Shown: one piece after another, positions 1 through 60,703 of the stretch
Layout of the letters: every line of letters starts with the position of its first letter
Numbering within the stretch: the stretch's first letter is position 1
NCBI GenBank assembly: GCA_964247055.1
Contig: OZ176051.1
Coordinates: 11,408,001 to 11,472,000 of the forward strand
From: Paragordius varius
Lineage: Eukaryota; Animalia; Nematomorpha
DNA length: 64,000 bases
Direction of reading: 5' to 3'
Translations under genes and position numbers: made by a program
Notes under the pieces: model-generated
The model's database searches: none
The model's input: only the letters and a program-made list of their open reading frames with translations
What the model was told of the DNA's origin: nothing

Positions 1-1959
1 CAAAAACCACTCGCCTCGCGGGTTTGTCGTTCCATTAACTGCAAAACATATTGGCATGCATCTATAGAGTTTTCATTACTCTTTCGAATGATATATTACA
101 AATGGGCATTTGTTGTATATTTTTAGAGAAAAACATTTTTTAACAAAATTTTGAAAAAGAGGGCGCATAATCATAAAAAATCAATTTATATAAATATCTT
201 AGGTAAAAATGATTATTAATTCGGATTTACAGTTGAAATGATAGTAAATATAAGAAGACAAAAATCGAGCGGCAGAAAAATTTGTTGTCTACTGTTATAA
301 TATGTGGAATGAAACATTTAGCTTTAAGTAAAAAATAATATAGAATTTTTTTCGCTATTGAATAATACAAAAATGGTAATGCTTTCGTAAATAACTTGAA
401 AGGAATAATAATTAAAGTATAGAAGCATTCATTTATTATATTTTTTAAACCACCTCGATTCTGTGTGTCATATGCAACAAGACCGCGAAAATCGAAATTA
501 TGTTTAAATTCTCTATCCAAAAATAGATGGATTTTACACCCTAGTCCGCATTATTTTAATTTAATAATGAAGTTCAGGATTATTTTTTGTAATAATTGTC
601 AAAAAACTAAACTACAGAATATAAAAAAATTCTATGGAATTACAATATAGAAAATTAACAGCCCAAATATTTGATTAACACTTGGATACAACACATTCCT
701 TTTAGTCCTTTGATTTAAATTTGGGGTAGTTAAATACCACAAGCTTGTTTAAATTTATATTCTTTAAAAATATGGAAGGAATCGAAAGCATGGCAAAATT
801 TTGCACTTATATAACATTAATGAACCGAAATATATAAAAAAATTTATTCAAAAATACTTGATATTACTTATTTTAAACTCCGAAAGGTAAATATTTGGTC
901 AACGTGACATGTTTGCAATGGTAAAATTGAAAAATAACACAAAATAAACCGCTTTTTCTATTTCTATCAATGTTTGATGTAATATATATAAATTGGCTTT
1001 AATTTTACCCTTAAAATTAAATGAGGATGATATTTTGCAAAAATTTTATAAAATAAAAATGGCGTTGAAGTAGTTTGACATGGAACTTTTTTCAAAACAA
1101 AATTTTATTAAGATATTTTGGCATATTTATATGATTTTTATTAGGACAAAAGCATATATTTAAATTGTGACCGTTTCCTTCAGTAGTTTAAAAATCCTAA
1201 CTCAATTTGAATCGAAGTGTTAATACTACGAGTCATCTAATCCTTATTTTATTTTTTTTTATTTAAAAACAGCCAACCATAAATTTAAATCACAAATTAT
1301 AATGGTTATTAAATATGTTATTTTAAATTAAGCTTATGATAGTTAATTTCATTTTAATTAAAAGATAGACTAATAAATGTGAAAAGCTAAAATTAGCATT
1401 TAGTACACTTAATTAAAAAACGAATTACACTTTCAAGGAAAGTATTTACTTTAACACCTAATTATTTGGTAATATATATTTCAGTTCCACAGCAAATATA
1501 AACTATGAAAATATTGGACAAATTTAAAAATATACACATGGCTTATCAGGGGCATTACATATAAATATGTAAAAATCATCATCTCAAAGTTTTGGCGCTA
1601 AATTTTAAAATCAAAAGTACCCGAAATTTGGTTTAAATTAAGTGTAAATTATTAAAAGCAGTTTTTAATAATTTATCATTTTATAGCCGTTCCATACAGG
1701 GAGTTAAAATTTGGACCAAACTTAAAAAGCTACTTTTTCTATATATGTTTTTGATGTTAAACAATCATATTAATTTTAAAAATTCTATATTTTAGGGCTG
1801 ATCCGAAACAATACTTTATACAAAAATATAAAGGAGGTTAGGGGTTAAATTTGATGCAATTTATTCAACAGATTTTTTACTATTATGGTATAAAAAAAAT
1901 TTTGGACTATATAAAATTGACATATAATTAGATTTAATCAGATATATTTATTTAATGAT

Positions 1960-2488
1960 TTAAAACCGTAATTTAGTAAAAAACCATCGATTTTTTCCAG
2001 TTTTATGACGTTCTTCTAATTTTCTTTTGCAATCACTCAATGCCTTTTTCTTCAATGCCGGATCATTCAGTGCGTTTTTATTAACTAAATTTTTACTGAC
2101 AGAAAGATCCACCGAATATCTGTAAAAATGGAAATATTTAGTCACAGCAGATAAAAATATTTAAGATCAAAATGACTATACCTTGTAGGGAGTAAATGGT
2201 TATAGTTATATATTTTAATAAAAGGTTTAATTTTCATTCGCTTTTCAGTTTTCTTCTTACCCATCTTGCGAGTTATTTTCCTTGGATATTTATCGATCCC
2301 CAAAACTAATGCGTGGGGATGAGGTCTATCCTGGGTAGGCTCATCAAATTGCTATTATATATAAAAATATTAAAATGATATATTAAGATTAAGAAAATAA
2401 ATTATACCCGCACAATAATAGCTTTTCTGCCAGCAAAACGTCCTCCCAAAATCAAAACCACCTTTCCTGATTTCATAATCTTGCCCAT
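1960..2488 (-). CDS. RPL27: 60S ribosomal protein L27 (eL27); coding exons 2488-2408, 2351-2182, 2119-1960; 136 aa
   Basis: The spliced translation [61 protein letters not shown]...[14 protein letters not shown]...DPALKKKA...[18 protein letters not shown] matches the eL27 family along its whole length. Introns are GT-AG (56 and 62 nt) with compatible phases. Confidence 0.97.
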
Positions 2489-2792
2489 GTTGAAAGCAGC
2501 TGGTTAAGCGGATAGACGGTTGATTTGATAAATTACCTATGTATTATTCTAATTAAAAATTATACTCCTTGATCCTCAGTCCTAATTAATTTTATTTTTA
2601 TCAGTCATTCCTCCTAAATTATTTTTGATATTATTACTTTATAACTATGTAAATGCAATTAATTTGTTTACAATAACATTTACATAAAATTAATTAATTT
2701 AAAGTTCAAATAGGTGAACATTAACCTTTATAATGCTAAGCTTTTAAAAATCACTTATATAAGTAGCATTTTCAATACAAAGATTAAGCATT

Positions 2793-5700
2793 ATGGCAAT
2801 TTTAATAAAAATATTGATTCTTGTGACAATTATTCGATTGAGCAACTCCTATATCGATGAAAACATAAACTACTGTTTGTCGTTACCATGGTACAATAAT
2901 TGCCTGTTGAATCAAGTATTTGAATCGCCAAAGTAACTATAATTATTTTGTAATAGATATGATACCTATTCAAACACCATAACTAATATAGTTAAAAAAA
3001 TTTCATTTGATTCCCAAATGATTAAACTATTAACAATGGATTTATTTTTCAAAAAACCACATCAACACTTTTTGACCCTTTTAATTTAGTCCTAGCGGAT
3101 ATAGATACTTTTTTATTCCAGAGGGAAAAAAATGTTAAAAATTGAAGATATTAGGCCAAATTTGAAACATGTTATCTTCTTAAGTGTTTAAGGCGCATAC
3201 CCACTATTTTTTAATAAAAATGTAAAATTCTAACTCACAGTCTTTTTCAGGGCCATTTTTTCTTAAATTTTTTTTAATTCGGTAATGCAACAGCTACATA
3301 AAATATATATTATGGTTAAGAAATAGTAATAAACAACTTTAGAAACGACTTCCGGCAAAATATACATAAAAAACTTTATTTTTGATTATCCGCAGTTCGT
3401 AATCCTGTTGCTGTGCCAATTTTACACACAAAAAATTATAAAGTAATAATATAGGCTAATATAATAGATGAAATCTATGTTTAAATTAAAAAACTCATAA
3501 AAAGTTTCAAACGGTAATAATTACCAAAAAGACCTCTATATTAAATTTTCCCAATATAACTACAAAAAGTGCAAAGGGGATAAAATGTTGATCTACCATT
3601 ATAAAAGCTTATATAAGAGGATATAAATGAAAAATTAAATGTAAAAATATTATTAGAATGATTATACAATTCATAAAAAATAATCTGTAATTCCGATAGA
3701 AAAATATATTAAATTTATCATGCTGCTTTTAGTTTAGGCCCTTACGAGTCCTTTAAGGAAAATATATTTTGTAGTAAATGCTCCATATCAGAAAATAATT
3801 TGCGCAAATCTTATGAATTAATTTTTTTGTTTTGCTCATTTCTTAATATCACTAAAATTAATAATAAACTACCTATAAAATGCAAAACAATATTCTTAAA
3901 ATTATTTAATTTTTAGATGTAGGGTCCGAAAATCCCAAATATTTTTGCTCTTTTGAATAGGCTGGTGATCTTAAAATAAACGCAAAAATGCCGGATCTGC
4001 ATGATGAAATTTTTAAATATATGCCAAATTTCGATAACAGCATTTATAAAAGAATGCTTTCAAATTTTTATAAGTTATTTTTTTGTATTAATTGCTTCAT
4101 TTTTAAAATACATTAAAATATTTAATGAACTAGCTATAAAAGGCAAGATTATCTTTAAAAATAAAAAATTTTTATATGTAGGCTCCGAAAGTCCCATATT
4201 TTTAGTCTTTCAAATGGGTACTTCTTGTAAAATAAAAAATGCCGGGACTGCGTGATAAAATTTTTAATGCCAAATTTCGATATCAAATTATTTAAAGCAT
4301 ACTTTTTTCAAAAATTTTGATTTTAAAATTTTGTTAAAGCGTACTTCATACTATTATGAGGCATGATGAACACGGTTTAAAAATGCTTTAAATATAAAAC
4401 AATTTGTATACGATGGTACTGAACATTTTCACCTCGAAATTTTATTTTAATTGTTTGTTCGTCTTCAAATTTATATTCAATCAAATGTATCATTTCAATA
4501 GAATTAAATTTTGAAATAAAGGAACCTAAAAATTAAAATCCGGAAAGATTAAACTTTCAGCAGCATAAAAATAAGAAAAGATGGTTTTTAATTATCTTAA
4601 ACGTTTTTATACGATTTCCATCTGGCCTATAGTAGGAAGTAGGATATTTTAACAATTTGTCCAAAATTTTCTCTCGAAGAATATGTTCTAAAAATATATT
4701 TAATTATTAAAATTTAGCATATATTTAAAAATTTTATTGCACTATGCATTTTTGCGATTATTTTAATAGAACCGGCTCGTTATAAGGAAAAGAGTGGCAT
4801 TTTCGGAGCCAACCTCTAAAAATTAAAATATTATAAAAGTACTGTTTTCATCATATTGTGTTAGTAATTTTTTTGGGATGAAGCCTTTAGGTTTCATCAA
4901 AAAAGTTATTACAAAAAAATAAGGTCAAATTTTGCCATTTTCTGATATGGATGACGCACAAAAGTGTAAATAACTTTTGACTCGCTAGAGTCAGAACCTA
5001 AAGCACCATGATAATCCTGTTTCCGTCAGAATATATTTATTTTATCGATGGCCGATTACAATGTGTATATTATCTCAGTAAATTTTAGATTTTGTTTTAA
5101 ATCAAACAATAATGGCGATTCTATTTTTGCGTTTATCGGATTATGCCAGTATTAATTTTATTGTTAAATGTTTAGAGGAATTAGACTTAGAAAAATAAGG
5201 GACAATGGTTGAATTAGTAATATTCTATATATGTAGCTTAAATTGTAGCCATTAGGTTATTCCATATAAGAAAAATCCATTTACTTTGGATGTTTTGTTA
5301 TGCATCGATGTTATATTTAATTGTGTTTAATTTCTATATATTATTAATTAATTCATTGTCAAGATTAAGTTCGTCAACTACTTTACCTACCTTTTAAGGA
5401 AGTTTTATAAAGAGGCATTTAAAATTTAAATATTTTAAAAAGTATTTAAGATAACAAGCTGAATTTTTATTTTTTATTTTAGGCCTATTATTCAAAAAAT
5501 AAATTAAAATATATAATTGGAAAGTCCTCATCTCAAACTTTTTTGGCGCGATTTTTTTTATGATTTTTCTTGAACGCTAATGCAACAGGCAAATAAAATG
5601 GTTAAGTAATGTAATAGTTGATTATAAAAGTTTTCAGGGTACATTTTACCATTATAAACCTGTATGTTGATTTTAATTTTTCCATCGTTTTTGGAGCTGT

Positions 5701-21480: not shown

Positions 21481-22582
21481 AGGGGGTCGCAAGAATTCTT
21501 ATGTTCAATTTGGTGCGTGAACAAAAAAATTGGAAACCAGTGAGCTAATATACCAAGAAAAAATTATAACTTAGACGGCATATTTTAAAAATTTCTAGAA
21601 GAATATAAGGTATTATAAATTTTAGAGCTAAAATCAAATATAATGGAAAAGTTAATATTAACGACAAAAGCAAATTTTAATTAGCCAATGTACTCTTATC
21701 TTTGGCTAATTTGCTAATCTATGACAAACAAATTTTTAGAAAGTTTTAATGTTCCATATTTTATTAAATGTTGGATTTCCAAATTAATGAGATCCTTTAA
21801 TTCCTCCTATATCAATCAAAGGACTCTAGACACGATTTGCATTCAAGTGCGAGTAGGTTATTTTAGAAAACCTTTTAAATGTCATGCTAGTCTAATTTAA
21901 TAAAAATTGTCGCGCAACTCGGAAATCATTGCCTTTATATAATTTTTTCTTATTTTTAGGAGGGTCCGAAAATTTGAAGTTTTCGGAACCGACGTATATT
22001 AAATTTAATAAAGATTTGGATGTAGCTAGTAAAAAATTTGATATTTTTTGAAATAACCTGCCCAACAATTTATATTTAATGTGCCCTATTTTTGGCTAAA
22101 AAATTGAGAACATACATTTAGTTTTGAATTTTTATAAAACATAAAAAGCACCATTAGAATCCTGATGTACCGTTTCCCAGTTTAAAAACATTTTCCAAAT
22201 CAATAGAAACGTTTTCCAGCAAATTTTCGGGAGACCCATGAGAACATATGGAATCGATAAGAAATTTAGTCTTTTTTATTTACAAATAAAGCGGCTTTTT
22301 ATATAGGCCGCGATGGCTCCGAATTCGTGAATAACACAATCCAAAAAACGCCCAATAAAAAATCATTTATTTTCAAAGCGTTTATTAATTAGCCATTGGT
22401 TAGGGTACAATCAAAAATTTAATACGCCACCATATAAATATTACATGGCGGCGTCATAGGGAAAATAAATCTATTAGATGAATGAAATACAAGATATTCT
22501 CATTTCTAAACTAGTAGTCTTTTCATTTACACTGTTATTTTTGTGTATATCTTAAAAATATTTTTCGATTAAAAAGTCTTAT

Positions 22583-22769
22583 TGCCACCTTTCGGGGATG
22601 CCAGGGGCATGAAAATGCGCTAGCGTCCAAGGCCATATCTTTAATAATCTGTAAAATCATTAGTTATACACAAGGGCATTGTTACGTAAATAATCGCCAC
22701 AATTAACCATGAAGTAAAATCATTCTGAATATGAATTATTTCATGGTAAGAAAACTCCGAACCCGGAGT
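22583..22769 (+). ncRNA. Unidentified structured element, copy 1 (candidate ncRNA or structured SINE-like repeat)
   Basis: GC-rich island with a GCAU-GAAA-AUGC tetraloop stem, a 12-bp stem ACCAUGAAGUAA/UUAUUUCAUGGU and a terminal ACUCCG/CGGAGU hairpin. A second copy lies at 30744-30932. Confidence 0.5.
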
Positions 22770-23022
22770 TATAAACTTTATATTTATAGCAACTAGCAAT
22801 TGTGGACATCAGGATTATATTAAATTAAAACCAGACAGTAATTATTAAGTATAATATAACACAGTCCACCACAGGGTAATCCCATGGTAAAATAAAATTT
22901 ATTACTAAATTATGATCGAATACAGAAATGTCATGCAAAAAAAAGAATTTATGGCTATGTATTATTACATGTTTGTATATACAATGATTATATTAATGAT
23001 ATCGGGGTTTTGAGGTAAAAAT

Positions 23023-26000
23023 TTATGATTGTGGTACATTTGCGATAGATTCATTGTGAACTTCTAAAAGGTGTCTAGCAAAAACATCCCTCTGTTTCCG
23101 TCCAAACCTAATTCCACAAAGGTGACAAAGGATATAGGAGGGTACATTACGCAGACCACGTCCAGATCCAAAGCCAATTGAATTATTTCTAGAAAAAGGG
23201 CAAAAAAAGTTAGACAGAATGTTTGCAAAAACTAATAGGAGTGAATGAATGAAAAAATATTATATTATGAACAGAAGTAAGTAAAAAACAAAATTAAAAA
23301 AGATAAAAACCCGTCCAGATATTCTGCATTTGTATCGATTACACCCGTCTCTATACCACTGCCATCGACCAAGTAATGATTTTGAGTGCTAAAGTAACAG
23401 ATTAAAAACTTATTGCGAAAAAATATTAATATTAGAATTTAAATAGTGCCCCCTTATTATTAATTTACTCCTTAATCTTAACAAAAGATATAATTACCAC
23501 ATATATCATTAATTATCCGTTTTTTATTAAACTAAATCCAACAACCTATTACAACAATTAATAAACTCTAAAAAAGTTAAAATTATTTTGCCTGTATAAA
23601 ATCTTTCATTTTTTTCCAAAAATTAAACAATATTATATATATCATTTCTCAGTCAATCAAAACATTTTCCCAGATAAAAACGTTTTCCTAGACAATAAAA
23701 ACGGTTTGATTTTGGTGATACATATCAAAACAAGATATAAAAATAACGTTTAATCATTAAGAGCACACTAATAAAGGATATTATTTTTAATAAAACACAA
23801 AACAATCAATTTCTTATTTGTTAAAAGTTATATTTTATTAACTGATTGAGTATTTTATAGTTTTTAAGATATTAGTAAAAAAATATAAAATATTTATTTT
23901 ATCGATGGTTCGCATATATAATCGGGGCTAACCTATAAAATATATAGTTTTGGTTAAATCCTAAATTTTTATAAAATATATTAATTCATTTCAAATTGTT
24001 CATTTAACAGTTTGAATTTGATTTTCCATTTCAACTAATCCTAATTAATGTACATATTTATTATCTTTTAGTCAAATCTTTTTTATTAAATAAGTTTGAA
24101 TCAAAAACATTTTAATTAAAAAGGTATTTTTTGTTTAAAAAGTGTTTTTCCGACTAACTTGACATGTTTAAAAACCAGTTTGAAGTGTTAAATGACCAAT
24201 TTGAGATGAAATGGTATATTTTTTAAAATTATTATTTCAACATCGCTATAAATTTTACAGGTTAGCCCCGATTATTAATGCAAACAATCGATAAAATCAA
24301 AAAATTATTAAATCTTAAAAATATCCCAAAAACCATAAAATACTCAACCAATTAATAAAATATAGCTTTTAGAGAAATAGTCATTAATGATTGTGTATTG
24401 GCATATAATAGAAAAATTTTCATTCAATAATTGTGTCTTTTTCAATAAATGATACCTGATTAATGTGCACTTAATTAAAAGTTATTTTATATCTTGTTTT
24501 GATATTTATAATAAAAAATTTTATCGTTTTTATTGATTAAAAAAAAGTATAGAAACTGGGATTTTGACCGGAAAACGTTTCGATTGACTAGAAAAACTTT
24601 TTTTTTGACTGGGAAATGATATGTATATTTAAATATATATATCAATAAATAAAAACTTATTTTTATCCATATTGCTATTATCGGTTATGTTGTTTTCGGT
24701 TGTATTAAGTATCATATATCCTCCCGACTCTACCAAATTGTCCGCATTAACATGCACATTTGTAAATTCTGTGCTTTCCGAGGCTTGTGGAATATTAACA
24801 ATATTGGTGGTAGTTTCTTGCAGATTTTCACACGCAGTTACAGTGATATTATTGGAGGAACTTAGCAACATGGCCTGTTCTTCGCTTGTTAATTCTTTAT
24901 ATTAATACGATACACATAAGCACACTGAATATTAAAATTAAATAAAAAAACCATTTTAAACCAGGGGTGTCCAATATACGGCCTACAAAATATTAGAAAA
25001 TCCGGAATTTGCAAAAAAAATGCTCACAAAATCTTAGTAAAATTAAATTTTTTCAATTGGCAAGAACTAGTAAAATGTATTGTGTTTGCCTTTTAGTTTA
25101 CTAATTTATGAATACCCATATATATTTCGAATTCGGTCGGGCATATTTGAGCCAGACATCCCTGTCTTAAACCATACAAAAAAATAATTAACTTTAAATA
25201 TTGGATGATTCGTTTCTAAACTTTCTTATCTAATATTAGTTTAATGTTGGCAACATAAAATTATCAATATATATTGTTTGTACATATTAATCATATGTGT
25301 ATAATATACCATTAACAATTCAAATTCACCCTAAAATAAACTATGTGTTTTTTTAAGATTAAAAATACCTATATTTTTTATATTTTTAAAAAATAAAATT
25401 TTGTTTAAAATTAATATAATACTGAAAAAATAATAAATTATGCCATCAAAAAATACATTTCTCACTAATGATGAGTTATATTAGACCAAAAACACAATTT
25501 ATTTTTAGGGTGAATTCGAATTGTTTAAAAGGTGAATTAAATTTGTAAATGGTATATATAAACCTTTTTGAATAAGCATGCCATTTTCATCGGTTACTGT
25601 AGTGTAAGCAGTGGGTTCATGACCAATTTGTGGGTTACAAATCGAATCATCCGTGGGCAAAATCAAAGCATTATTTTGGTTATCATAATATATCAATTCT
25701 CCCGTATCGGTTGTTAACATGGTTGTCGAATCCATGCCATTATTTGCGTGAACGACATTGAGTATTTCAGTCCCAGCATTTACTGTATTTTATATATATA
25801 TATATATGCAAAAAATTACTCTGCAAAAAAGTTTTTTCACAAAGAAAATTACACCTTGCATTCGAAATTATCATGATAAACTTTGATTTTGAAATCTAAA
25901 CTTGATTTTGATATCAAGAGTCAATAGGAAACCTATGTAATGGACAAATAGTTTTTATTGCGCTAGTACTTAGACTGTTGTTAGGAGTAAGTTTTTTTCT

Positions 26001-29000
26001 ATCAAAACATGGTTATCTCAAAAATAACCAATAAAAATATTTTATCTTAACCCACAAACACATTTATATTCATGAGGTAAATTCGGTTTACGTGGGTATT
26101 TGCAATTATAAATGGTGTTTAGTAATATATGTACCAGCATTTGTAATTAATTCAGGGGGTAAATTATTTGCATTTGCGACCAAATCAATTAGCTCGGGGT
26201 TTTGTTGTTCATATTCAGAAATCATACGTGTCCACCTTGCACCATCTTCTTGTAGTGTCCGTATAACCTTTTACATTTCAATGTTATAATGTATATATAT
26301 TGTGAAAAAATACTAAACTAATTCGATAGGGCCCAATTTTTTGCAAAAAACTAAAATTAAATGGACATTATATTTCATTTAATACTCTGTTTTTTTTATC
26401 AGAACCATATATAATTTTAAAGTAAAAATGATACAAAAAAGTTGATGTGGTTCATTATGAGCAACATACCCTCAATCTACAAGATTTGTGGAAAATCTCA
26501 CCCTACTTTAACCGATTATAAATCAATATCCAGGACTTCTTATTGTTGAATTGAAAAGGGCAAGAGTAATCAGATAGGGGGTGTTTTACAGTCTAAGTAG
26601 ATATTATTTCTAACTTATATTTTAAATATTGCCGACAGCATTTACAGTGACATGCCATTCTTTTGGTTAAAAAACAACGAAACCTATTTTTATGGAAACC
26701 AAATTTAAGCCATTTTTATGCTTTACACTGTAGTCGAGATTGACTTTTTGATTATAAAAATAACCTTCGCCATAAATTCCGTAATAGTTTTAATAATGAG
26801 TTCTTTTTGAGGCCTCTTTTAGGTGTGCTGCTGTTTACAATAATTAATGCAAAAAAAGTAGCAGTGTAGGCCTGCTCACACTATGGAAGGCTTACATAAG
26901 AAGGATTAACTGAAGGTTGTTACCAGCTATGATAAAAACTAGGACATGCGTCATAAGCTAATTTCAATAATTTATAAGCGCCTGTTGTGTTCATTTTTTA
27001 CCATGTTAATATACCATTTACAGTTCAAATTTACCCTTGAACAATTCAAATTCACCCTAAAAATAAATTATGTGTTTTCGAACTAATATAACTCATTATT
27101 TATAAAAAATATATCTTTATGGCTTAGTTTATTATTTTTTCAGTATTATTATAATTTAAAACAAATTTTTATTTTCCAAAAATATATAAAAATATTGGGT
27201 AATTTTTAATCTAAAAACATATATTTTATCTGAGAGTGAATTTAAATTGTTCAAGGGTGAATTTGAAGTGTTCAAGGGTGAATTTGAATTGTTCAAGGGT
27301 GAATTTGAATCAAGGGTGAATTTGAATAGTTCAAGGGTGAATATGAATTTTTCAAGGGTGAATTTGAATTGTTTAAGGGTGAATTTGAATTGTTTAAGGG
27401 TGAATTTGAATTGTAAATGGTATAAGTAGTGTACTACCTCAGGATCCGTTATCCCAATCTCCTCGTAAATGTTGGCCGGTCTCCCGCGGTACCCGGAGCC
27501 GCGTCCGCGCGAAGCCCCAAAAACGCCCGCACCTCGAGGTGGAGAGACCGGTTCACCGCGCTCAGCGGCTTCCAACTTAGCCAAGGCTGCCAAGTAGATT
27601 GCCGTTGAGGCCTGACCACGTTTTCGGCCTCGTCGCGATTTTAGGGGCATGCCAGTTGCACCACCTAAACTATTTATCATTGCGTCATTATTACTATTCA
27701 TATTCAGGTCAGGATTATTGGGATTGGGAGCAAGACTGTTATTTTGTAAGGAATCATTGGCAAAATTTGTGACACTATCATAATCTATGGGAAAATTATT
27801 TTAAATTACCCTAAAATGTGTAGTATATAATGTGAAAAAAAAGGTAAATTTTGGCTGGTATGACCAAGCGTGTGATATATAAATACTGATTATCAATTAT
27901 TTGGATATTTAATCGAACGAATATATTATAGGTCACAAAAAACTAATTTTATGATGTGATAAAAAAGATGTAATTGGATATAAATAGTCTCAATTGATAT
28001 AATCGCAGTTTTATGCTTAACCGCTCCTTTTAAAAATAAAATAATAAATGATTTCTAGTAATAAAAACATTTAAACGTCCTAAATTTTATCATGAATTAA
28101 TTTATTTCAATCAACTTCTCAAACAAAAAACTAAAAAATATCATTTAATGATGAGTTAGACCTTTAATGCCATAATGATAAATAGAGTCTGAGAGGATAG
28201 CATTGGTGATTGGATCAATTACATCGGCTAAACTATTTTTGATCATTTTCCCACTGATTTTATTTACATGCTCAGAATTATAAGTGGTGGTAGATATTTC
28301 ATTATCTTTCACAATGAAATTTGAGTTATTGTAATATTCCGTTTTAACAGGCATCTGAACGATAAAAGGTTTTGTTGAGGAAAAAATAGAAATATTGTGT
28401 AAAAAAAATTTAAAAATGTGCAAAGGTTAAAGTGAAAAAATTACTTTATTATCCATGTGATCAACATCATCATTTACGTCAACTATGGGTAAATTACTAG
28501 AAACATATAATGAAAAATATAGATCATAAAGTTTATGAATTAAAATTATGGTATCCCCTCCTCATAATAAGCTTTATTAGATAAAAACGTCTAAATTCTA
28601 ATTATAGATTATCATGCATCCAAAGTTTTTAATAAGGTAGTTTTCTATTTATAAAAAGGTGCGTGGATTGCCACAAACTTAATGATGAACATATCATTAA
28701 ATGAAAACAGAAATAGTAACAATATAAGAAGAGTCAAATATAAAATTATAAGGACAAAACGTAAAATTGAAATAATTGTTTACAAAATCCCAAATAATCG
28801 CGATTGTATAATTTTTAAAGGATATTTCGTTTTTTAACTTTTATAACCGTTAAAAATATGATTAAACTAATAAATGATTTGGACCAATTTTTGTCCTTAT
28901 AATTTATTTTATTTATCATTTGAAAAATTTTCTGATTATTTTTAAAAAATATTAATACAACTTAAAGCAACAGATTACAAAATTTGAGTGAGGGGGTGAT

Positions 29001-32000
29001 TATATATTCAGTATTTTACAAACACTAAATAACAAAATAGTCAAACTTGTCGTTAAGTACAAAATTATTTGACAATTTTGTGGGCAATCTCCGGATGCGT
29101 TGTCCTTTATGGGTTAAAACTACTTTTTGATAAGGCAAAGTGGCAGCTAAAATGACAAAAATAATAAATATATACGGAATCACCCTTGGGCGACACGAAT
29201 TTACAGTTAACATTAAGATTTCCCCCTCAAAAATTTTAAAATAACACTCAAACATTCCAAATTCCCCCTTAAACGCTACAAATCCATAAAAGTAAAAATA
29301 AATGATATGTTTATAAGATAAATACGCTATAAGATAACAGTATATTTTATCATTTTTAGTTTTATTATTATGGCTATATTTTGTTGAATTAAAAAACGAT
29401 TTCATTTTTCAAAATTATCAAAAAATTAGGTTAGGTGTCCAGTTATATAACTCTCTCCAAATTAAAATCATTTATATTATTAATTTAAATAATAGTTGGT
29501 TAATCTAACGTATTTAACATGTAAAAAGGGGACTTTAAAAATGTTTAAGAGTAGATTTGAGATTTAATACATAAAAATATCTAAAATTAGACGGACGAAC
29601 TATAATCTTGTAAAGAATGATAATAATATTGTTTACATATGCGATATAAATTAACAAAAAATAACCGTAAAATTAATTTATTTTTTCCAGCCAACAACGT
29701 AATAACTTATTAAAATAATATATAAAATATGTTTAAAGTTTTAATATATATGCCCAATTTAAAGATAAAGCCAACCTATTTTTTAATTACCACCTTGGCT
29801 TATGATAATATTTTTGGCTGCCAAAAAATCAGGAAAACATAATTTAATTTATTTTATAAATTGGTCACTCTTTATGCGATTCTGTGTTCAAACTTAAAAT
29901 GCCTTTTTTTCTTTTTCTAATAGAATTTACATACGTTTTTTATCATCCATGGACCATTTGAGTGGCTTACCGCGTTTGGTTTGGGGTTTTGGTGGTTCCT
30001 CATACGTTTCGGGTTGTCCTATGAATACATTTACAAAATTTACGAATGAAAATATAAAGTTAAATTATTCAACATATAAATTCTAATCATAAGTGTCTTA
30101 GTATTGTTAAAAAAATTTCAAAAATTTCGCTAAATAACATTTGTGATAATGATTATTTATATACATCATGCATTTTATGGTTGTTTATTATACATATGGT
30201 AGTCCAATTCGAAACACAGATAATAATAAAAAAATTTTTTTTCCTTTCATTTTTCCATACACTACTATGTTGCAAATTGCCCAAGTATAGTGTGAAATAA
30301 GCAACCATTAAAAAGCATACTGTATTTATATAAGTAATTACCAGGAATTATAACATTGAGTGTTTTCAAATCCAATCTCCAATATGGTTGAGTCACATTC
30401 AAACGATCTTGTATCCGTACAAAATTTTCATGAATACAAGGAATTTTATATAGCTTTAAAGTGGCAGTCTTAGGTACTAACAAGTTTGTAGCCTTGGCTA
30501 AATCCATATTTTGCGATTCATTTTTAATTTTCTTATTGTATGCTTCTATATTCTTTTCATATGACAACAATAACTGGGATATATTGATGGATGGTGAAAA
30601 AAAGCCCATTAAAGCGGTAAATATGATTCGATCTCCTAGCCAAAAGGGTAATTTGCATACATCTAAATAGAAGAGAGAACGAATGATTAAATTACAAAAT
30701 TGTAAACGTATCATTAAAAATAAATATTTAATAAAACAATTTCGGCCAACCTTCCCGCGGTGTTAGCTGGGGCATGAAAATGCGCTAACAGCAAAGGCCA
30801 GTTCCTAATGATTTGAAACCATTAGTTGTACACAAGGGGACGTGTTACGTAAAAAATCGCCTCAAATTACACCGAAGTATAAATATTATTAATATGAATT
30901 ACTTCGTGGTATGCAAACTCCGAATTCGGAGTCCTACCCTTTATTAAATGAAAAAAGTTTAATTATTTTGCCTATTGAATCACCAAATTTTGAAGTTTAA
31001 AATGGGTGTTTTGGAAAAATTAGAAGGCGTCCAACAAAATATTTATTGATTTTTGATTATATTTTAAATTGATCTCATTATAAAAGCATCATGAATTGCT
31101 CATTGATCAAATACGGCATTTTGTATGTCATTATTCATAGGAAAAAATTTATCCAATATAAATTTCAAGTCATATCCATTCATAAATATTAGTATAATAT
31201 CAATAAATTAAAGGAAAGTAAGGTTAATTGAAAATACAATTAACCATCCCTGTCAGAACGGGAAACTAATAAGCTCTTGTCATATATTTCCGGTTATTAA
31301 TTGAAATATGGCTCTCATCATGACAAAAACATTGTGTAATATATATTCCAAATTAAATAATTTTTATTAAAAATTACTAAATTAATATTTTCTTCTAATG
31401 GTACTTATTATCAGGGAATGAGGGGGTCATATAAAAACATTAACCTCGGCCCAAACATCCCCCTAATGAATATCGAAAAAATACGCTGGAAATACCTTGT
31501 TGAACTATATTACGGTGCCTGTTACGCATGAAATGTAGATTGTCACTAATACCTTCATCGGTATAGTGTGAGTCGCCATAGTAACTGCTTTGAGGACTGA
31601 TATTAGTTTTCTGTTTTAAATGATTCATAATATCAGTTTCCTTACTAATATCACCATACTCATCGTACTCATCATCGGTGGTGAAAGATTCCTCTTCAGA
31701 TTCAATGCCATCGCTAAAATATAAATCTTCCTCTTCCGAACTGCGTAATTCATCGGTGTTGTTTTGGGTTGACGCTTTTTTGGGGTGTTTTCTACAACAA
31801 CAATAATAAAAATTTTACAAAACATATATATATCATCATTCACGAGTGGGTTTAAATGACTTTCATTAAATTGAAGTGAAATTATTATATATATTTTTTA
31901 ACTAGATTTGTCGAACATTGAGCAACCTGACAAATTTTTTTAAATAATATTTTTTAATTAAGTCAGATATCTAAGTCACGCTTTAATACGAAAACAAATA

Positions 32001-35000
32001 ATATAGTTTAAGTCTAATTAATTTCACAATTATTTTCAAAACTTATTTTGTCAAATCAACCGCGCATAAATATAAAAAAATTAAAGATAATTTCAAGAAT
32101 ATAAAAAACTTAAAAACTGAATTCTTGAAATTATGTAAGAAATCATCAATAAACTTTGTTTGAAATGGGATAAGATACTTTTTATCATGAGAACCAAAAC
32201 CACTAATTTGAAGGTGGGTATTGGATTCATTTTTTGATGGGAGGAAAGATTGGTTAGAAGAGAGGGTTGGCTTAGTTGGTTGAACAATCGATTCTGCTGA
32301 CGAAGTATAAGCAGCCAGGTTAGCCATAACGCTCGCTACATTAAGCACGGAGGGACTATCGACCCTTCTATAATGACATAGACATAAATAAAAAATAACG
32401 CATAGTTTAAAATTAATTCTAACAAATCTTATTTTAAATAAACGCAAAAATTCTGAGATTGAGCGACGATAAAATTGTTAAAATATGCATATGACATCAA
32501 AAAAAAAGATTATTGAAATATTGCCAAATAAAAACATCAGTGCATAATATGTGTTAAACATGATGATTGTTTTTTCGTTTGTTTGGTACATATATTATAA
32601 CTTGAATATTCAAAATCGAAGTAGACATTGAAATTTTTTCTTTATATTTTCATTTTAAGATTAACCGATAAATATTGCGTACTATTGTAAAATAAAAACA
32701 TAAATAGATATAAATCTAAATTATAATTAAAATTTTGATTTAATCTTTTGAAAATATATTATATTACAATTAATTAATTTAAAATGTCAGTTTTGTTTTG
32801 TTTAAAAAGTTCCCTCTCTGAAAAATAATTTATTTAATCACAAATAAAACTTTGGACAATAATGCAGTCCAAATAGAAAAAATAGTAATGATTTAAACTC
32901 AAGGCTAACGTATAAATATATATGGAATTTGAAATAGCTTGAGGTATAAAAACTGTTTTGGCAAACCATTTTATATCAACATTATAAATATTATAAATGT
33001 AAAAATATAATTTTTATGTAAAATAATCTAAGTGGCAAACTTTATTGCAACTAATTACAATTTACAATTCGGTAAAATATTGAAGCTTAAAAACATTTTA
33101 AAAACCTATAGATTTTACCAATATTTTTGAGGTATAAAAAATTTCAAAAGGTTACTATTTTAAGACCAGTAGTATTTTTTACCCAATATTAGACGATTGA
33201 TTCAGATTTGAGCAGATTCTGTCATATTTATTTATAAGCGTTTCGCTGGAGCCACCAAATTTTTGATCTAAATTTTCTGATTGATGGATGAGTTCATTAT
33301 GTGTAGGCACTATGAAATAAATATTTAATAATTTATCAAATAAAAGTTGAATAATAGCCAACGATACATTAAGAATATATGAAAAGTCAAATTATAAATA
33401 AGAAGAACCGGTAAGGAATGTCAACCATATATTTAATTATTTTAAATAATAAACTTATATAGGGGGAGGGGGTTGATTACATAATTAAAAACCTCTTTGT
33501 GAAATGTGGTAAATTTAAAAAAATAATTCGGCTCTCGATCAAAAAATTATTTTAAAATTAACTTAACTAATTTTACGCCGCATTATTTATTAAAACTTTT
33601 CAGATATTTCCTGAAAGGCACTGAAAAATTAAAATTAATCAGAATATAAATTTAGAAAAACTTTCAGATCCAATCATATTTTCAGTTGTAGCCAAAACAT
33701 TTTTAACATTGTAACCACCTTCGACTGTTCCTTCATCCAAAACAATACTTTCGATAGCAAAACCGTCCGAATTTTGGATCGAATTAAGGTGACCTGTTAA
33801 ATGTGCAAAGAGGGATGGTTTTTATGAAATTTAGCTCTTACAATAAAATATATATCGCATATAAACGAAAATGCGTCATTATTTAGCTATAGCGAGGATA
33901 GGAAATAAAAATGTTTATTTATATTTGAAGCAATTGATTTTACTATCGAAATACAATATATTTTTAAAAATTTTTTCGCTTATATTTTATCCATTATATA
34001 TACAGTAAAAATTGAAACTATGCGGACAAAACGTGAAAATATAAAGACAAATGTTTTTTTCTAAAGATCAACCATTATCTCAATCGTTTAAAACTGTAAA
34101 GTATAGAATAGAGATAGATGTATATTGGTGACACAATCAATTATATATTTTAAAATTGTAATTAGTTGATGATTGTGAGAAAAATTAGGGTTTAAAAAAG
34201 TATAGTTGTCTTTTAGAAAATTTTTTTGTCCGTATAATTACAATTTTTATTGTATAATTTTCATTTTCATATTATTACTGTTTTCATCCAACATGGAAGA
34301 ATTTTGTGGGTAATTTCCAACAACACTAGGATTTGTGCTATATCTCGAGGGCGTAGCTAAGGCTAAAATAGTGGCTTCATCATCGCGACACCCGCTCTCA
34401 TAATGACGTTTTTTCACGTTCCAAGTTTTGAAACTTTTGCCACACCGATCACACACGTACGGTAATTTCTACGTACGTAGTAGAAAAAAAAGAGTTTTTA
34501 TGGAATTTATAAATATATGTGATGCGCATTCATTTTCCCTTAACGATTATACACATATGATAAATTCTATGTTGTTAACTTTTTAATCAATTACAAATAG
34601 TATGAGGGAACCAGCCGAATAAATGCGCAGTTAAAAATTGTGAAAAGTGATCGCTAGATCAATATAATTATTAAGAATCATAACCCTATCAATTCCCATA
34701 AAACATATATTATAAACAGCGAAAAAGGAGTGAGTATATATATATATATATGGCGGTGACCTTATGTGTGTTAAGTTTTCTATCAGTTATCTGTTATAAA
34801 ATATAAACGCTTAACAAAAAATATGCTATAAATAGTATGATAATCCTAGAATGTTGTCATTATTTATATTTGTAATTTATAACACTATAAAATCAAAAGT
34901 TATGTTTATAACTTTTAAAAAAACATAACCAGATAATATTTTATTGAAGTTGCTAAAAATGATCCATTAAAAACAATTGCTACATAAATAAATTATTGTG

Positions 35001-37834
35001 AATATCATACCCCGGCATGCAGTAATATGTGCCTTTTTAACGTCGATTTTCGGCTCAAACGAACATTACAAAACGGTTGAGGACATTTAAATGGTTTTAG
35101 AATTCCTTCAAAAAAAAACCAAATAATATATAATTAAGATAATCATATATTTAAAGCTTTTTTCTATTTAACAATTATAATTTTAACAGATAAAAAAAAG
35201 ATTAAAAACCACAAAATAAGTAAATACTCGATTTTCCGTAGGGTTGTTCCTCATCACTGGGAATAAACTCGCCTGATGCATTATAATGGGAACGTTTAAT
35301 GTGTACTTCGCACACATTAGCTTTCCGGAAAGTTTTGTAACAGTGGGGACAAGCAAAAGGTCGTTCCTAAATTTATAATAATTTAGGTTTTTTTAAATTT
35401 TATTTAATTATTTTTATGATTATTAAAAAAATCGTTTATAAGCACCGCTACACTAATTTAATTGCATTTTAGATTTTAAAATAGAGTTCTAGTTTAGGAT
35501 CAGGTCCAAAAATAGTGAATAAAACTATATCCTTCATACTTGGGTAATTATGGCGAAATAAAGGTATAATATTACCCTACCCATTATACAAAAAAATTAT
35601 TATTACCATTTGTGTATGAATCATAATGTGCCGTTTCAAACTGCCTTTGGTCGAAAAAGAGAGTCCACAATTCACATACGTGCATTCAAATGGTTTTTCA
35701 CCTATTGGAAAATATTAATTGTAAAAAAATGATCTAAAGCTTATCAATAAAAACGGGAACTGACATAGAAATCTAAAAAATTATATAATAATAACTTAGT
35801 AAAACCTAATTTTAAAACTATAAAAGATAATATAAAATAATGAAATAAACCAGTGTGAGAACGTATGTGATCCTTTAAATGACTAATTTTCTTAAAACGT
35901 TTTTGACATAATTCACAAAGGTATCGTCGCTCAGCCAAATCTTCAAGATCATTACTAAAATAAGTCATAAAAAAATTTAGTAATGCTGAAAATTTTAAAC
36001 TTATAAACTTGTTAAATATATATAAATTTTATAAATAATAAGTGGTTGAAATAAATAGGAATTTGTTTAATATCTATAAAATAAATAATTTCAAATTCTA
36101 TCTAATAAATAGGTTGTATCGGGAGCGAAATTTCTTTTCAATGAACTTAATAAATATGTATCTTTTTATCAAAGAGTAGAAAAAATATGAGTTATTTTTT
36201 TAACGAAACGGTTAAATCAAAGGCGAAACAAAAATTTGACATTTATCTTACCATACAACGCAAAAAAATCCACTGTAATCAGTGGTGGCACGAATTAAAA
36301 TATATGTAAAAAAGTTGGTGAACATTAACAGTAGCTTGAAATTAAACGTTTTTAGGCGCTTATGTAATTGGGACAATAAATTAAAAACCAATTTCGTGTT
36401 TTAACACTTGTGTATAGTACTTAAAAAATGATACAAATCAGCATTATCCACAAACTAAGGTAAAACCGGTTAAGTTCGCCACCGTGTTAGAATTTTAGAT
36501 ATCAACAAAACGGTTCAGGGTCCAATATCCGTCCCGCTTCACAAAAAATTGTTTTAAGACAAAAGGGTTAAAAGAAATTACGTATAAAGACTTACTAGGC
36601 GGATCTAGGTCTCCGGGTAGATTTCCTCGGCATATGTAATATACTACTGGGCCCCCCACCCATTCCGTTATAACCGGAGGCATAAGAGTCCATAAAATAT
36701 GAGGGGTGATATTCACCTCCTAGCAAACTAAGGGCCGAATTATTCATGTTATCTCCAACCATGTTTGAGCCATAATATAAATTTTGTTGTTGGTAATTAT
36801 TATTGTTCGGGTTAGGGTTAGTCGTAGTATCTTCAGCAATGGTTAAATAATTAGAACCAGATAAAGGATCATCACTAAATAATATTACAAATAAGAACTT
36901 AAGATAGAAAGATGAAAGGTAAAAAAAGATATAAGAAAAAGATTTGTGTGGCAATATTTATTAAATATATATAATTTATTTGATAGTTGTTGAAACTCAA
37001 CATATTAATATCACACTACGCCAAATATGATTAAAACACCTGAGAGTATAGTCATTTAAAATGGGTCCTGTGATTAAATAAGAAAACAATTTAATATTGT
37101 CTAGGAAAAACGTATTGCAATAAAATTGTCATTTAATAAGGAAACCGATTTGGAACGACTTAAAAGGCGTTTAATATAATGACAATGCATTTAAATGGTA
37201 ACTCGCTTTGATCTTGGATAAACAAATAGTAAATATACTTCAATTGATTATATGAAGTAAGATTTCCATCAGCTCCAATGCTAACACCAGCTGCTTCGAG
37301 AGCTTCAAGTTTTATGTCACTAACATCAATAGTGTATATAATGTCGCCAGTTTCGGGATTTATTGACGTTTCAACGGCTGAACTAGGCAACGCATTTATA
37401 TTGATTCCAAGATTTTGAGACGTTATTAATATATTTTGTTGTTCATTATTGGAAGCATTTGCCAAAGGTTCATTAGGATCCAATTGCATGCCTAAAAATA
37501 TATTAATTTTGATTAGAAAAATAATACTTTGTTGCCCGTGTACTTCTTTAAGATGCGTTTCACACTCCTCGTAAGTGGCAAAAGCACAAAAACAAACATT
37601 ACAAGCATAAGTCTAAATAATTAATTTAATTATTAACCTCATTATGGGACGATTCCAAATGTTGTTGCAAGGCAAATGAAGTATCAAAACTTTCCGTGCA
37701 AAGTGAACATTTTAAGGATTGTTGAATAAGGTCATCGTTCACAACCTCTGAATATTATATTTATTTTTTAAAAAAATAGTCTAAAAATTAATCAGACGGA
37801 CCGAATAATAAAAAATAAATATAACCTTACCCAT
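23023..37834 (-). CDS. Multi-zinc-finger protein (7 C2H2 + 1 C2HC fingers, acidic tract, RG-rich segment), ~22 coding exons
   Basis: Phase-consistent exons include 37834-37831 (ATG), 37747-37638 (CSLC..HLESSH), 37612-37528 (CNVC..HLKEVH), 37491-37239, 36874-36596, 35954-35851 (CELC..HIRSHTG), 35701-35607 (EKPFECTYVNC..HIMIH), 35366-35228 (ERPFACPHC), 35105-35011 (CPQPFC..HILLH) and 34468-34279 (CDRC..HYESGC). The chain continues to a terminal exon with CHLC..HLLEVH and a TAA at 23025-23023. A few middle splice sites are uncertain; no ortholog assigned. Confidence 0.88.
23637..24622. mobile_element. ~1-kb palindromic (foldback/MITE-like) element in a zinc-finger gene intron
   Basis: Termini atatcatttctcagtcaa / ttgactgggaaatgatat. 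Inner arms also match as reverse complements (ttatcgatggttcgcatatataatcggggctaacct vs aggttagccccgattattaatgcaaacaatcgataa). Confidence 0.8.
24962..25164. mobile_element. hAT-type MITE, 203 bp, intronic
   Basis: TIRs caggggtgtc / gacatccctg; flanks ttttaaac / tcttaaac (7/8 TSD). Confidence 0.8.
25307..25554. mobile_element. 21-bp-array foldback MITE, copy 1 (1+2 units)
   Basis: TA|taccatt-aacaattcaaattcaccct ... agggtgaattcgaattg...gtaaatggta|TA; the core is homologous to the copies at 27012 and 45769. Confidence 0.85.
27012..27422. mobile_element. 21-bp-array foldback MITE, copy 2 (2+9 units, opposite orientation to copies 1 and 3)
   Basis: TA|taccatttac ... gtaaatggta|TA. The terminal arrays are made of aagggtgaatttgaattgtt(c/t) units and their reverse complement. 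Confidence 0.9.
30265..30662 (-). pseudogene. Exon-like fragment nested in a zinc-finger gene intron, homologous to ~47250-47500; runs into a CAGTATG MITE end
   Basis: An AG acceptor is followed by an open frame DVCKLPFWLG...FFSPSINI...KIPCIHENF. It shares taaaattccttgt (KIPC) and an adjacent ~90-bp arm with the 47.2-kb region. Confidence 0.4.
30744..30932 (+). ncRNA. Unidentified structured element, copy 2
   Basis: Same block order and near-identical length to 22583-22769. Invariant GGGGCATGAAAATGCGCTA; stems UGUUAGC/GCUAACA, CGAAGUA/UACUUCG and ACUCCG/CGGAGU. Confidence 0.5.
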
Positions 37835-58746: not shown

Positions 58747-58804
58747 ATAAGCACGAGTCATAAATTCGCGTTGATTACGTCCCTGCCATTTGTACACACC
58801 GCCC
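58747..58804 (+). rRNA. Short inverted fragment of the 18S rRNA 3' region
   Basis: ataagcacgagtcataaattcgcgttgattacgtccctgccatttgtacacaccgccc is sense-strand 18S (the GUACACACCGCCC motif). Confidence 0.9.
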
Positions 58805-58808
58805 ACTG

Positions 58809-60703
58809 AAGAAAGAGCTATCAATCTGTCAATCCTTACAGTGTCCTGGCCGGGTGAGTTTTCCCGCGTTGGGTCAAATTAAGCCGCAGGCTTCACTCCT
58901 GGTAGTGCCCCTTCGTCAATTGTTTTAAGTTTCAGCTTTGCAACCATACTTCCCCCCGAACCCAAAAACTTTGGTTTACCGAAGGCTGCCCGTCGGGTCA
59001 TATAAGAATACCCCGACGGATTGCCGGTCGGCATCGTTTATGGTCAGAACTACTGCGGTATGTGATCGCCTTCGAACCTCTGACTTTCGTTCTTCAATAA
59101 TGAAAACATTGGCAAATGCTTTCGCAGTTGTTCGCCTCCCGGCGGTTCAAGAATTTTACCTCTGGAGCCAGAGTACAGATGCCCTCGTCTTAATCATTAC
59201 CTCGGATTCTCGAGGTCCTATTCCATTATTCCATGCACAGATATTCGAGGCATCGAGCCTGCTTTAAGCACTCTAATTTTTTCAAAGTAAACTTTCCTTT
59301 AAACCAAAGACACTCGGTGAAGCGCACCTAAGACAAGACGGATTTTAGGACGGACAAGGAAACGATCGCAGCTAAGAGGGCTTCCTCCCGTTACCCGAGA
59401 TCCAGCTAAAAGCTTTTTAACTGCAACAACTTTAATATACGCTTTTGGAGCTGAATTACCGCGGCTGCTGCACCAGACTTTCCCTCCTCGTTAAAGGATC
59501 TAAAGTGATCTCATTCCAATTACAGGTTCTCGTAAGAGACCTACATTGTTATTTATCTTCACTACCTCCCCGAACTGGGAGTGGGTAATTTGCGCACCTG
59601 CTGCCTTCCTTGGATGTGGTAGCCGTTTCTCAGGCTCCCTCTCCGGAATCGAACCCTGATTCTCCGTTACGACCCTGGTAGGCATATAACCTACCATTGA
59701 CAGTTGATAAGGCAGACGTTTGAGATACGCCGGTACAAGACCATGCGATCGGCAAAAAGTTATCCAGAGTCACCAAAAACGGTTAGTTTTTGTACTAATA
59801 AAGGCTATCATACGATTCGATGTTTTAACATGTATTAGCTCTAGATTACCACAGTTATGCATGTAACATCGACAATCAAATAAACCATAACTGATTTAAT
59901 GAGCCATTCACGGTTGCACTTTGGGTAAGTTTATACTTAGACATGCATGGCTTAATCTTTGAGACAAGCATATGACTAGGGTTGTGCATTTGACAGCTTT
60001 TTCAAAAAAGTCCGGTCAGACCCAGTCAGACAATGGTCGTGACCGTGGTCATGACCACTTTTTATTTAAGTAAGTATCATGCGATATGGGATTGCCAAGA
60101 TAATGTTCGAATTACACTGCCGTTTCACTAATTATGTCATGTTTTTTCTTAAAAGTTTGTATTATACATTTTTTTAATATTTATTATTTACAAATATTTT
60201 CAATCAAATTTAATATAGAAATTTGTTTTCATGTGGCCATCTCAATCTTCAAATACATAGCTTTTAATACCGGATATTTCAAATAAAATTTTACCTAGTT
60301 TGTTCTTTCTTTAATCATTAAAATATCCAATTATAAGATGTGTTTCATTTTATTAGCTCACATATATGGAATTGCATATTTTGCAAAGTGCTTGATTGTT
60401 TTGTTTTTCGAAATAACTTATATGCTTGAATGCTAACGTTATAAGGATGCATGTTTAACAATTTTCAATATATATTGTTAAATAAGCAAATTTAAATATT
60501 TAATTTTTATTTTTAAAACTATAATAAAAAACAATTAATTCTTACTATCTCTTTTCTAAAAAAAAGTTACTAGCAATTTTTAAAAAACAGCTTTTTTAAA
60601 TGAACATGGTCAAAAAAATAGTCAGTAACCACATGACCCGATCAATTGACCGGGTCATGACTTGGTCAGCACAATCCTACATATGACTTTTGGCAGGATC
60701 AAC
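58809..60703 (-). pseudogene. 18S rRNA pseudogene (5' ~1.2 kb), interrupted by a MITE
   Basis: Universal 18S motifs on the minus strand: GTTGATCCTGCCA, GTCATATGCTTGTCTCAAAGATTAAGCCATGCATG, GAGGGAGCCTGAGAAACGGCTACCACATCCAAGGAAGGCAGCAGG, CAGCAGCCGCGGTAAT and GCGGCTTAATTTGAC. It has small deletions, is 3'-truncated and carries a 703-bp insertion. Confidence 0.95.
59977..60679. mobile_element. hAT-type MITE, 703 bp, inserted near the 5' end of the 18S copy
   Basis: Perfect 8-bp TSD CATATGAC (59969-59976 and 60680-60687); TIRs TAGGGTTGTGC / GCACAATCCTA (10/11); clustered GGTCA/TGACC subterminal motifs at both ends; AT-rich non-coding core. Confidence 0.92.

Follow-up and report, generated by a model that had tools for sequence, protein, structure and literature searches.

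What is the sequence that occurs twice, at positions 22583-22769 and 30744-30932, in a 64,000-nucleotide (nt) stretch of the genome of the nematomorph Paragordius varius (assembly GCA_964247055.1, contig OZ176051.1, positions 11,408,001 to 11,472,000; referred to here as the window)? The window is AT-rich and eukaryotic in character (∼26% GC). An earlier note, made from the letters of the window, had singled out two same-strand islands of ∼190 nt with conserved blocks and several hairpins, had read selection on RNA structure into their differences, and had offered as identities a novel noncoding RNA (ncRNA), a ribozyme-like motif, or the structured end of a short interspersed element (SINE) or Helentron. 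The islands and their blocks are present as described. They are homologous, with a mean column identity of 84% when aligned and with 78% identity over 178 nt by BLAST (E 2.4e-34).

Very probably, the islands are old and inactive insertions of a retroposon of ∼221 nt, similar to short internally deleted elements (SIDEs) and SINEs, that derives from a 3,349-bp RTE-like long interspersed element (LINE). This answer is carried by the composite origin of the element, a ribozyme fold with covariation, target site duplications (TSDs), tails, truncations, copy number, and the neutral decay of its copies. The element is an ordinary, though fairly uncommon, type of mobile DNA and not a new RNA gene.

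A Dispersed Family of Retroposed Copies

The assembly that was searched comprises 110.6 Mb in 44 contigs. Copy 1, the more upstream of the two islands, retrieved at least 146 first-look candidates, and all 40 of those that were scored matched it at 77–83% identity; the last 80 nt of copy 2 retrieved 81 candidates. A 32-mer spanning the internal junction of the element (see below) is found at 40 genomic sites with up to three mismatches, and a 34-mer from its head at 70, while the control pattern for each is found at none. The islands are members of a dispersed repeat rather than a unique RNA gene, and the novel ncRNA of the earlier note gives way to a family of at least 40–70 dispersed copies.

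When copies are aligned together with their flanks, the 5′ boundary of the family is sharp and lies at GGCCAAC, and part of the copies are 5′-truncated. At the other end, a terminal hairpin is followed by CCTACCCTTTAT and then by a (TGA)n run of variable length. The family consensus measures 221 nt, to which most copies are 87–94% identical. TSDs across the family are 9–15 bp long. Under a strict definition, TSDs of 11–14 bp abut five of 16 full-length copies, as against 4.4% when flanks are mispaired between copies, and looser duplications are visible by eye in several further copies. The absence of TSDs and terminal inverted repeats that was originally reported holds for the two old copies in the window, but TSDs are clear across the family.

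In two loci, L024 (∼1480-1500) and L026 (∼1470-1500), the first 10–25 nt of the element are duplicated immediately 5′ of its first nucleotide, G1. Such duplicated 5′ junctions are variation of the kind expected from template jumps as reverse transcription ends.

A Composite of the Two Ends of a LINE

The same genome holds the apparent parent. It is a LINE of 3,349 bp with a single open reading frame (ORF) of 998 amino acids, intact in loci L064 and L065, in which Pfam recognises an apurinic/apyrimidinic (APE) endonuclease (Exo_endo_phos), a reverse transcriptase (RVT_1), and a PHD/C1-like zinc finger. Copies of this LINE are ∼98% identical at the protein level and are flanked by TSDs of 11–12 bp, one abutting GGCCAAC and the other following a short (CCAT)n tail. 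The stop codon is ∼20 nt from the 3′ end, right behind a hairpin built by the last codons.

The short element consists of LINE positions 1-174 joined to positions ∼3292-3343, with the interior ORF missing, and the head runs collinear with the LINE 5′ untranslated region (UTR) over its full length, at 82–99% identity. Most genomic matches to the first ∼170 nt run on into other, coding sequence. On the collinearity of its two parts, the element evidently arose by loss of LINE positions ∼175-3291. Three further deletion derivatives exist as single copies, in which other LINE positions are joined: 172 to 2989 in L011 (1494-2024), 155 to 3291 in L022 (1497-1705), and 249 to 3262 in L025 (1500-1813). 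The junction of the amplified family (174 to ∼3292) is distinct from all three. Internal-deletion derivatives thus arise repeatedly, and one of them was amplified.

At least two further LINE families accompany the parent, or family 1: family 2 (L067-L075, L089, and L090) with an ORF of 1069 amino acids and family 3 (L076-L082, L087, and L088) with one of 988 amino acids. Both begin with the same ribozyme fold as family 1, described in the next section, and the three have several 5′ UTR modules in common, namely a hairpin downstream of the ribozyme, a AAGGGCAT block, a GCCTCAA block, and ACCATGAA. The microsatellite tails of families 2 and 3 differ, being (GGAT)n or (ATCAAGT)n. A hairpin of 5–6 bp at the end of the ORF is found in all three families, each with its own sequence, which fits a structural recognition signal.

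The upstream ATG of the 5′ UTR lies in a ACCATGAAG context. In family 1 (L062 208-249, corresponding to LINE ∼145-186), this start context opens an upstream ORF of a mere 13 codons, and the long ORF follows ∼190 nt downstream. In family 2, the equivalent ATG apparently starts the main ORF.

The partnership with a LINE bears on the suggestion of a Helitron or Helentron end. A DNA transposon terminus, either the 3′ hairpin of a Helitron or Helentron or a miniature inverted-repeat transposable element, would account for a short GC-rich hairpin close to one end. It would not account for TSDs of 9–15 bp, 5′ truncations, and microsatellite tails, nor for collinearity with a LINE whose product comprises an endonuclease and a reverse transcriptase, and the alignments contain no terminal inverted repeats. 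This explanation is exceedingly improbable. The part of the suggestion that survives is the structured, SINE-like retroposon; the Helitron end does not, given the TSDs, truncations, and tails.

An HDV-Like Ribozyme at the 5′ End

From its first base onward, the LINE matches the Rfam model drz-agam-1 (RF01787), a ribozyme similar to that of hepatitis delta virus (HDV), with a score of 38.9 bits (cut-off 37), and its head gives weaker matches to two other HDV-type Rfam models. A well-preserved short copy (L030) scores 28.9 bits with drz-agam-1, which is below the cut-off. Of the 56 candidates scored genome-wide, 19 pass the cut-off; the 14 control genomes are without a match. The matches fall in at least three LINE families, with the motif at the exact 5′ end of each, and in LINE copies flanked by TSDs the first base is ribozyme position 1. 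The ribozyme is recognised in scans of better-preserved copies and of the LINE, and not in a scan of the decayed copy 1.

The ribozyme occupies the first ∼70 nt and has the form of a nested double pseudoknot composed of P1, P1.1, P2, P3, and P4. Since MAFFT misplaced the longer P4 of one family, a parse anchored on regular expressions and a covariance-model alignment were used. The pseudoknot positions pair in 93.7% of cells in the MAFFT alignment and in 88.4% of cells in the model-guided alignment of 44 distinct sequences, which was fitted to P2, P3, and P4 and not to P1 or P1.1; with slid partners the figure is 31–49%. Among the 44 sequences, 12 pairs change on both sides, and such changes fill 50 cells against 15.6 in shuffled alignments, a value reached in 0 of 500 shuffles. 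Positions 1, 2, 3, and 6 of P1 and positions 1, 2, 3, and 5 of P2 covary across the three LINE families; the segment parse gives, for instance, C-G/A-U and A-U/U-A in P1 and U-A/C-G and G-C/U-A in P2.

The remaining parts of the fold differ in how far they vary. P3 (ACC/GGU) and a C-rich L3 are almost invariant, while the sequences of P4 are unrelated between families. G1, at the base of P1, pairs with U or C in all families. Likewise in all families, a C-N-A-A-C strand precedes the 3′ strand of P2 and, checked at the level of sequence, would hold the putative catalytic cytosine of J4/2. The heads of the parent LINE and of the intact short copies are accordingly predicted to adopt an HDV-like ribozyme fold.

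This fold places the hairpins of the window copies in another light. The GCAU-GAAA-AUGC hairpin, the stem formed by CCAUGAAGUA/UAUUUCAUGG versus CACCGAAGUA/UACUUCGUGG, and the terminal hairpin that differs in its loop alone (AACC versus AAUU) are all present. The first stem of the earlier note, with its GAAA loop, is a real hairpin and corresponds to P4 of the ribozyme, but the outer pairing drawn around it joins the 3′ strand of P1 to the catalytic strand of J4/2 and is no ribozyme helix. The proposal of a ribozyme-like motif on the plus strand came close as regards the head, which belongs to the known HDV-like class. A loose resemblance to RNase MRP found no counterpart, as neither RNase MRP nor RNase P is matched in Rfam scans at the gathering cut-off or at E≤10.

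A classical SINE transcribed by RNA polymerase III (Pol III), with a head taken from a tRNA, 5S, 7SL, or small nuclear RNA (snRNA) gene and a tail derived from a LINE, would be equally short and noncoding and would show the same LINE-like 3′ end, TSDs, and simple-repeat tail. The head speaks against it, as it consists of LINE 5′ UTR, collinear at 82–99%, and of an HDV-like ribozyme. ARAGORN finds no tRNA, the copies give no Rfam match to tRNA, 5S, 7SL, or snRNA, and inspection by eye revealed nothing convincing in the way of tRNA A/B boxes, as originally noted, or of 5S similarity. Such an origin is highly unlikely.

At one locus (L084, G000:C6:3678968-3679163), the 3′ end of a LINE lies immediately upstream of the ribozyme of another copy. 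With this head-to-tail layout, the transcript of the upstream element could be trimmed by the downstream ribozyme as well.

The Two Copies in the Window

The bounds of the element are somewhat wider than the islands, and its parts are listed in Table 1. Positions 22573-22737 of copy 1 correspond to positions 8-174 of the parent LINE at 82.8% identity (BLAST), and the internal-deletion junction falls at ∼22736/22737. The first arm of the hairpin called stem 2 derives from the LINE 5′ UTR, including the upstream ATG, and the second arm from the end of the LINE ORF.

TABLE 1. Positions in the window of the two copies of the retroposon and of their parts.
Feature	Position	Strand	Remarks
Copy 1 of the ∼221-nt non-autonomous element	∼22571-22781	+	5′-truncated by ∼7 nt; identity to consensus 0.80
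Degenerate HDV-like ribozyme relic, copy 1	22571-22632	+	P1 5′ strand absent; P3/L3 mutated
Stem 2, copy 1	22707-22746	+	Arm 1 22707-22716; arm 2 22737-22746
Terminal hairpin and decayed 3′ end, copy 1	22754-22781	+	Hairpin 22754-22769; corresponds to the 3′ end of the LINE with its stop region and final codons
Copy 2 of the element	∼30744-30944	+	Full-length 5′ end (GGCCAAC); ∼88% identity to consensus
HDV-like ribozyme relic, copy 2	30744-30797	+	Starts at G1; P2 5′ strand deleted; one P1 mismatch
Hairpin directly downstream of ribozyme, copy 2	30806-30825	+	Derived from LINE 5′ UTR
Stem 2, copy 2	30870-30909	+	Arms 30870-30879 and 30900-30909 flank the deletion junction
Terminal hairpin and 3′ end CCTACCCTTTAT, copy 2	30917-30944	+	Hairpin 30917-30932; (TGA)n tail reduced or lost

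In copy 1, the P4 hairpin (22607-22618) is undamaged. The relic as a whole has no HDV-type Rfam match at E≤10, only chance matches, and scores 28.5 bits under R1, a covariance model built for this ribozyme, against 100 bits in intact copies. The head of copy 2 has suffered an internal deletion of 16 nt that took the 5′ strand of P2 with it; its match to drz-agam-1 is partial (17.6 bits, model positions 19-76 only), and under R1 it reaches 40.5 bits over positions 20-64. The hairpin that follows the ribozyme in copy 2 recurs in other LINE families with a different sequence. Neither window copy fits the HDV-like fold. Judged from these lesions, both carry broken ribozymes and are most likely inert.

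An old insertion may still be exapted, for example as an antisense regulatory RNA or as a structured element acting on the zinc-finger gene. Both copies are antisense to the minus-strand region that holds C2H2 exons, lying within or beside it, and their 3′ hairpins are undamaged. Their divergence from the consensus, 20% in copy 1 and 12% in copy 2, is equal to or above that of other copies, and they are indistinguishable from the rest of the family. A function of this kind is therefore hardly to be expected of either.

Two neighbouring features were recorded. On the minus strand, positions 34388-37709 contain five C2H2 zinc-finger motifs in two reading frames, which fits the zinc-finger gene noted earlier. 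Further along the same strand, at 58776-59983, Rfam finds two fragments of eukaryotic 18S rRNA with internal gaps, one covering model positions 4-1116 (693.8 bits) and the other 1188-1491 (67.7 bits). They lie inside the final stretch of the window, which has a higher GC content (31–38%) from 58 kb onward, and look like a truncated or rearranged piece of ribosomal DNA (rDNA) or a pseudogene. Beyond these fragments, a scan of the whole window at the Rfam gathering cut-off returned nothing.

Neutral Decay of the Copies

Whether the hairpins of the copies are under selection was judged from 24 copies with at least 85% identity to the consensus. Divergence per site is 0.100 in the paired columns of the consensus fold and 0.082 in the unpaired ones (p=0.18). 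There are five double changes that preserve pairing, against 7.9 in shuffles, and 193 broken pairs, against 190.6. RNAalifold recovers almost no consensus structure from the genomic copies, and a well-preserved copy has an unremarkable minimum free energy (MFE; z = -1.06). The copies of the family decay neutrally, their stems as fast as their loops and with compensatory changes at chance level, and selection on RNA structure, as the earlier note read it from the two islands, is not supported.

The observation that had suggested such selection is nonetheless real. A U-A to C-G double change in stem 2 distinguishes the two window copies, and it also splits the consensus of the amplified family (CACG/CGTG) from the LINE (CATG/CATG). 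In one of the two states both arms contain CpG, in the other TpG/CpA, and CpG sites that decayed separately in each arm would leave the same picture. Individual copies show every mixed, mismatched combination of arms. A single event of this type is about what chance would produce.

A family of host ncRNA or ribozyme genes maintained by structural selection, with the window loci as functional members, would thus be credited with genuine hairpins and with one double change, seen both between the window copies and between the short family and the LINE. Yet at that change both arms have CpG/TpG/CpA sites, which can easily decay in parallel, and dozens of dispersed copies carry TSDs and tails. The equal decay of stems and loops, compensatory changes no more frequent than chance, an MFE z-score of merely -1.06, and the damaged heads of both window copies make such a gene family very improbable. 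Both outcomes that the earlier note had named as telling against its proposal, an Rfam match and many neutrally decaying copies, were found.

Proposed Mode of Propagation

As an insertion product of LINE machinery, the element, which is without a recognised promoter, would be transcribed within a longer host or read-through RNA, and a ribozyme cut just 5′ of G1 would set the 5′ end of the RNA. The LINE endonuclease/reverse-transcriptase protein would then recognise, in trans, the common 3′ hairpin and tail, nick AT-rich DNA, and copy the RNA by target-primed reverse transcription (TPRT), leaving TSDs of 9–15 bp, now and then a truncated 5′ end, and a (TGA)n tail of variable length. Of the LINE, the element retains the ribozyme (nt 1-70) and the conserved 5′ UTR modules up to ∼174 at the front, and at the back the final ∼50 nt, in which the last ORF codons form the terminal hairpin of 5–6 bp by the stop codon, followed by a short microsatellite tail. 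The proposed steps follow what is known of R2, RTE, Baggins, and L1Tc elements and of R2 SIDEs (PMC6765202, PMC3774820, PMC3185411, PMC3414825).

Several points weigh against deriving the islands from this particular LINE by this route. The amplified short family ends in CCTACCCTTTAT and (TGA)n, while the present LINE ends in CCTAAAATTAT and (CCAT)n, so its original partner was possibly an earlier LINE variant, and the very LINE behind the burst may have died out or have escaped sampling. Members of the short family are 6–13% diverged from their own consensus, against ∼2% among LINE copies, from which it follows that the burst predates the current LINE copies. The parent is called RTE-like on its architecture: it is compact and has one ORF, whose product begins with an APE endonuclease and includes a reverse transcriptase, and it ends in a 3′ UTR of a few nucleotides and a tail of simple repeats. 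Finally, we infer self-cleavage, co-transcription, and mobilisation in trans from analogy with other elements.

Relation to Known Ribozyme-Bearing Elements

The eel elements UnaL2 and UnaSINE1, described by Kajikawa and Okada in 2002, are said to be a stringent LINE/SINE pair with a common 3′ stem-loop and repeat tail. The present pair resembles them in a common terminal hairpin and simple-repeat tail, likely the signal recognised by the reverse transcriptase. It differs in its head, which is a LINE-derived ribozyme here and that of a tRNA-derived Pol III SINE there.

Among the closest architectures is that of the R2 SIDEs of Drosophila (Eickbush and Eickbush, 2012, PMC3414825), which consist of a ribozyme joined to a LINE 3′ end (PMC3414825). 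Like them, the present element is noncoding, fuses the 5′ HDV-like ribozyme of a LINE to the 3′ end of that LINE, has no recognised promoter of its own, and would spread by the TPRT machinery of its parent. Repeated internal deletion is a further likeness, with at least four junctions in the present genome. The parents are unlike: R2 is specific to rDNA and uses a restriction-like endonuclease, whereas the present parent is RTE-like, of the APE type, and dispersed genome-wide. The present element also keeps ∼100 nt of 5′ UTR past the ribozyme and is found in at least 40 dispersed copies, while non-LTR SIDEs have been described as rare (PMC3414825).

HDV-like ribozymes are known at the heads of RTE, R2, Baggins, and L1Tc elements (PMC6765202, PMC3774820). 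The present ribozyme shares with those of RTE, Baggins, R4, and L1Tc elements the nested double pseudoknot and the predicted cut at the first nucleotide of the element, and the head of the LINE is similar enough in sequence to drz-agam-1 (RF01787) to pass the Rfam cut-off (PMC6765202, PMC3774820). In contrast, its P4, P1, and P2 sequences are lineage-specific, and the window copies no longer fit the fold.

Dispersed partners of this type also occur in trypanosomes. NARTc has its ribozyme in common with L1Tc, and in the trypanosome pairs NARTc/L1Tc and RIME/ingi the common, ribozyme-containing part is the first ∼77 nt (PMC3185411). In these pairs, as here, a dispersed non-autonomous element bears the ribozyme-containing head of an APE-type LINE. 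The LINE clade and host group are different, and the Pr77 head of the trypanosome elements doubles as a promoter (PMC3185411).

A Possible Long-Range Helix in the LINE RNA

The two arms of stem 2 come from opposite ends of the LINE, and it is conceivable, if rather unlikely, that this hairpin is what remains, in collapsed form, of a long-range helix in which the upstream start-codon region of the LINE RNA would pair with the last ∼40 nt of the ORF. In family 1, positions 145-154 and 3292-3301 are perfectly complementary over 10 bp, a match equalled in 15 of 500 shuffles of wide windows, and in family 3 ∼17 bp of other sequence pair at equivalent places. Against mononucleotide shuffles, the duplex energy gives z = -3.9 in family 1 and -5.2 in family 3 and is not significant in family 2 (z = -0.8). 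The windows for this comparison were short, were tied to the AUG and to the end of the ORF, and were picked after the pairing had been seen; CATG is, moreover, self-complementary. RNAduplex over long 5′ and 3′ windows was uninformative.

Both putative arms contain other features of the LINE. The 5′ arm (LINE 145-154) holds the upstream ATG in its ACCATGAAG context, which is common to all three families, and a portion of a conserved (L/V)-H-G motif at the C terminus of the protein is encoded by the 3′ arm (LINE 3292-3301). The deletion junctions of the amplified family and of L022, two derivatives that may not be independent of each other, fall on the 5′ edge of this second arm. The U-A to C-G change of the amplified lineage would be compensatory in such a helix. 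If the helix is real, the LINE RNA would be cyclised, a reverse transcriptase that skipped from one side of the helix base to the other would generate the short parasites, and the helix itself would be part of what the reverse transcriptase recognises.

Implications

For annotation, both window loci, and likewise the ∼70 similar heads genome-wide, should be masked as repeats and not listed as RNA genes. The genome of P. varius offers a clean natural pair of a LINE and its short deletion parasite, with a 5′ HDV-like ribozyme and a 3′ hairpin in common, outside the rDNA setting in which SIDEs were defined. Several independent junctions are on hand, as are three related LINE families for covariation. 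With this material, the minimal RNA needs of RTE-like mobilisation, that is, a ribozyme and a terminal hairpin, become testable now, and so does the pairing of the 5′ and 3′ ends over long range.

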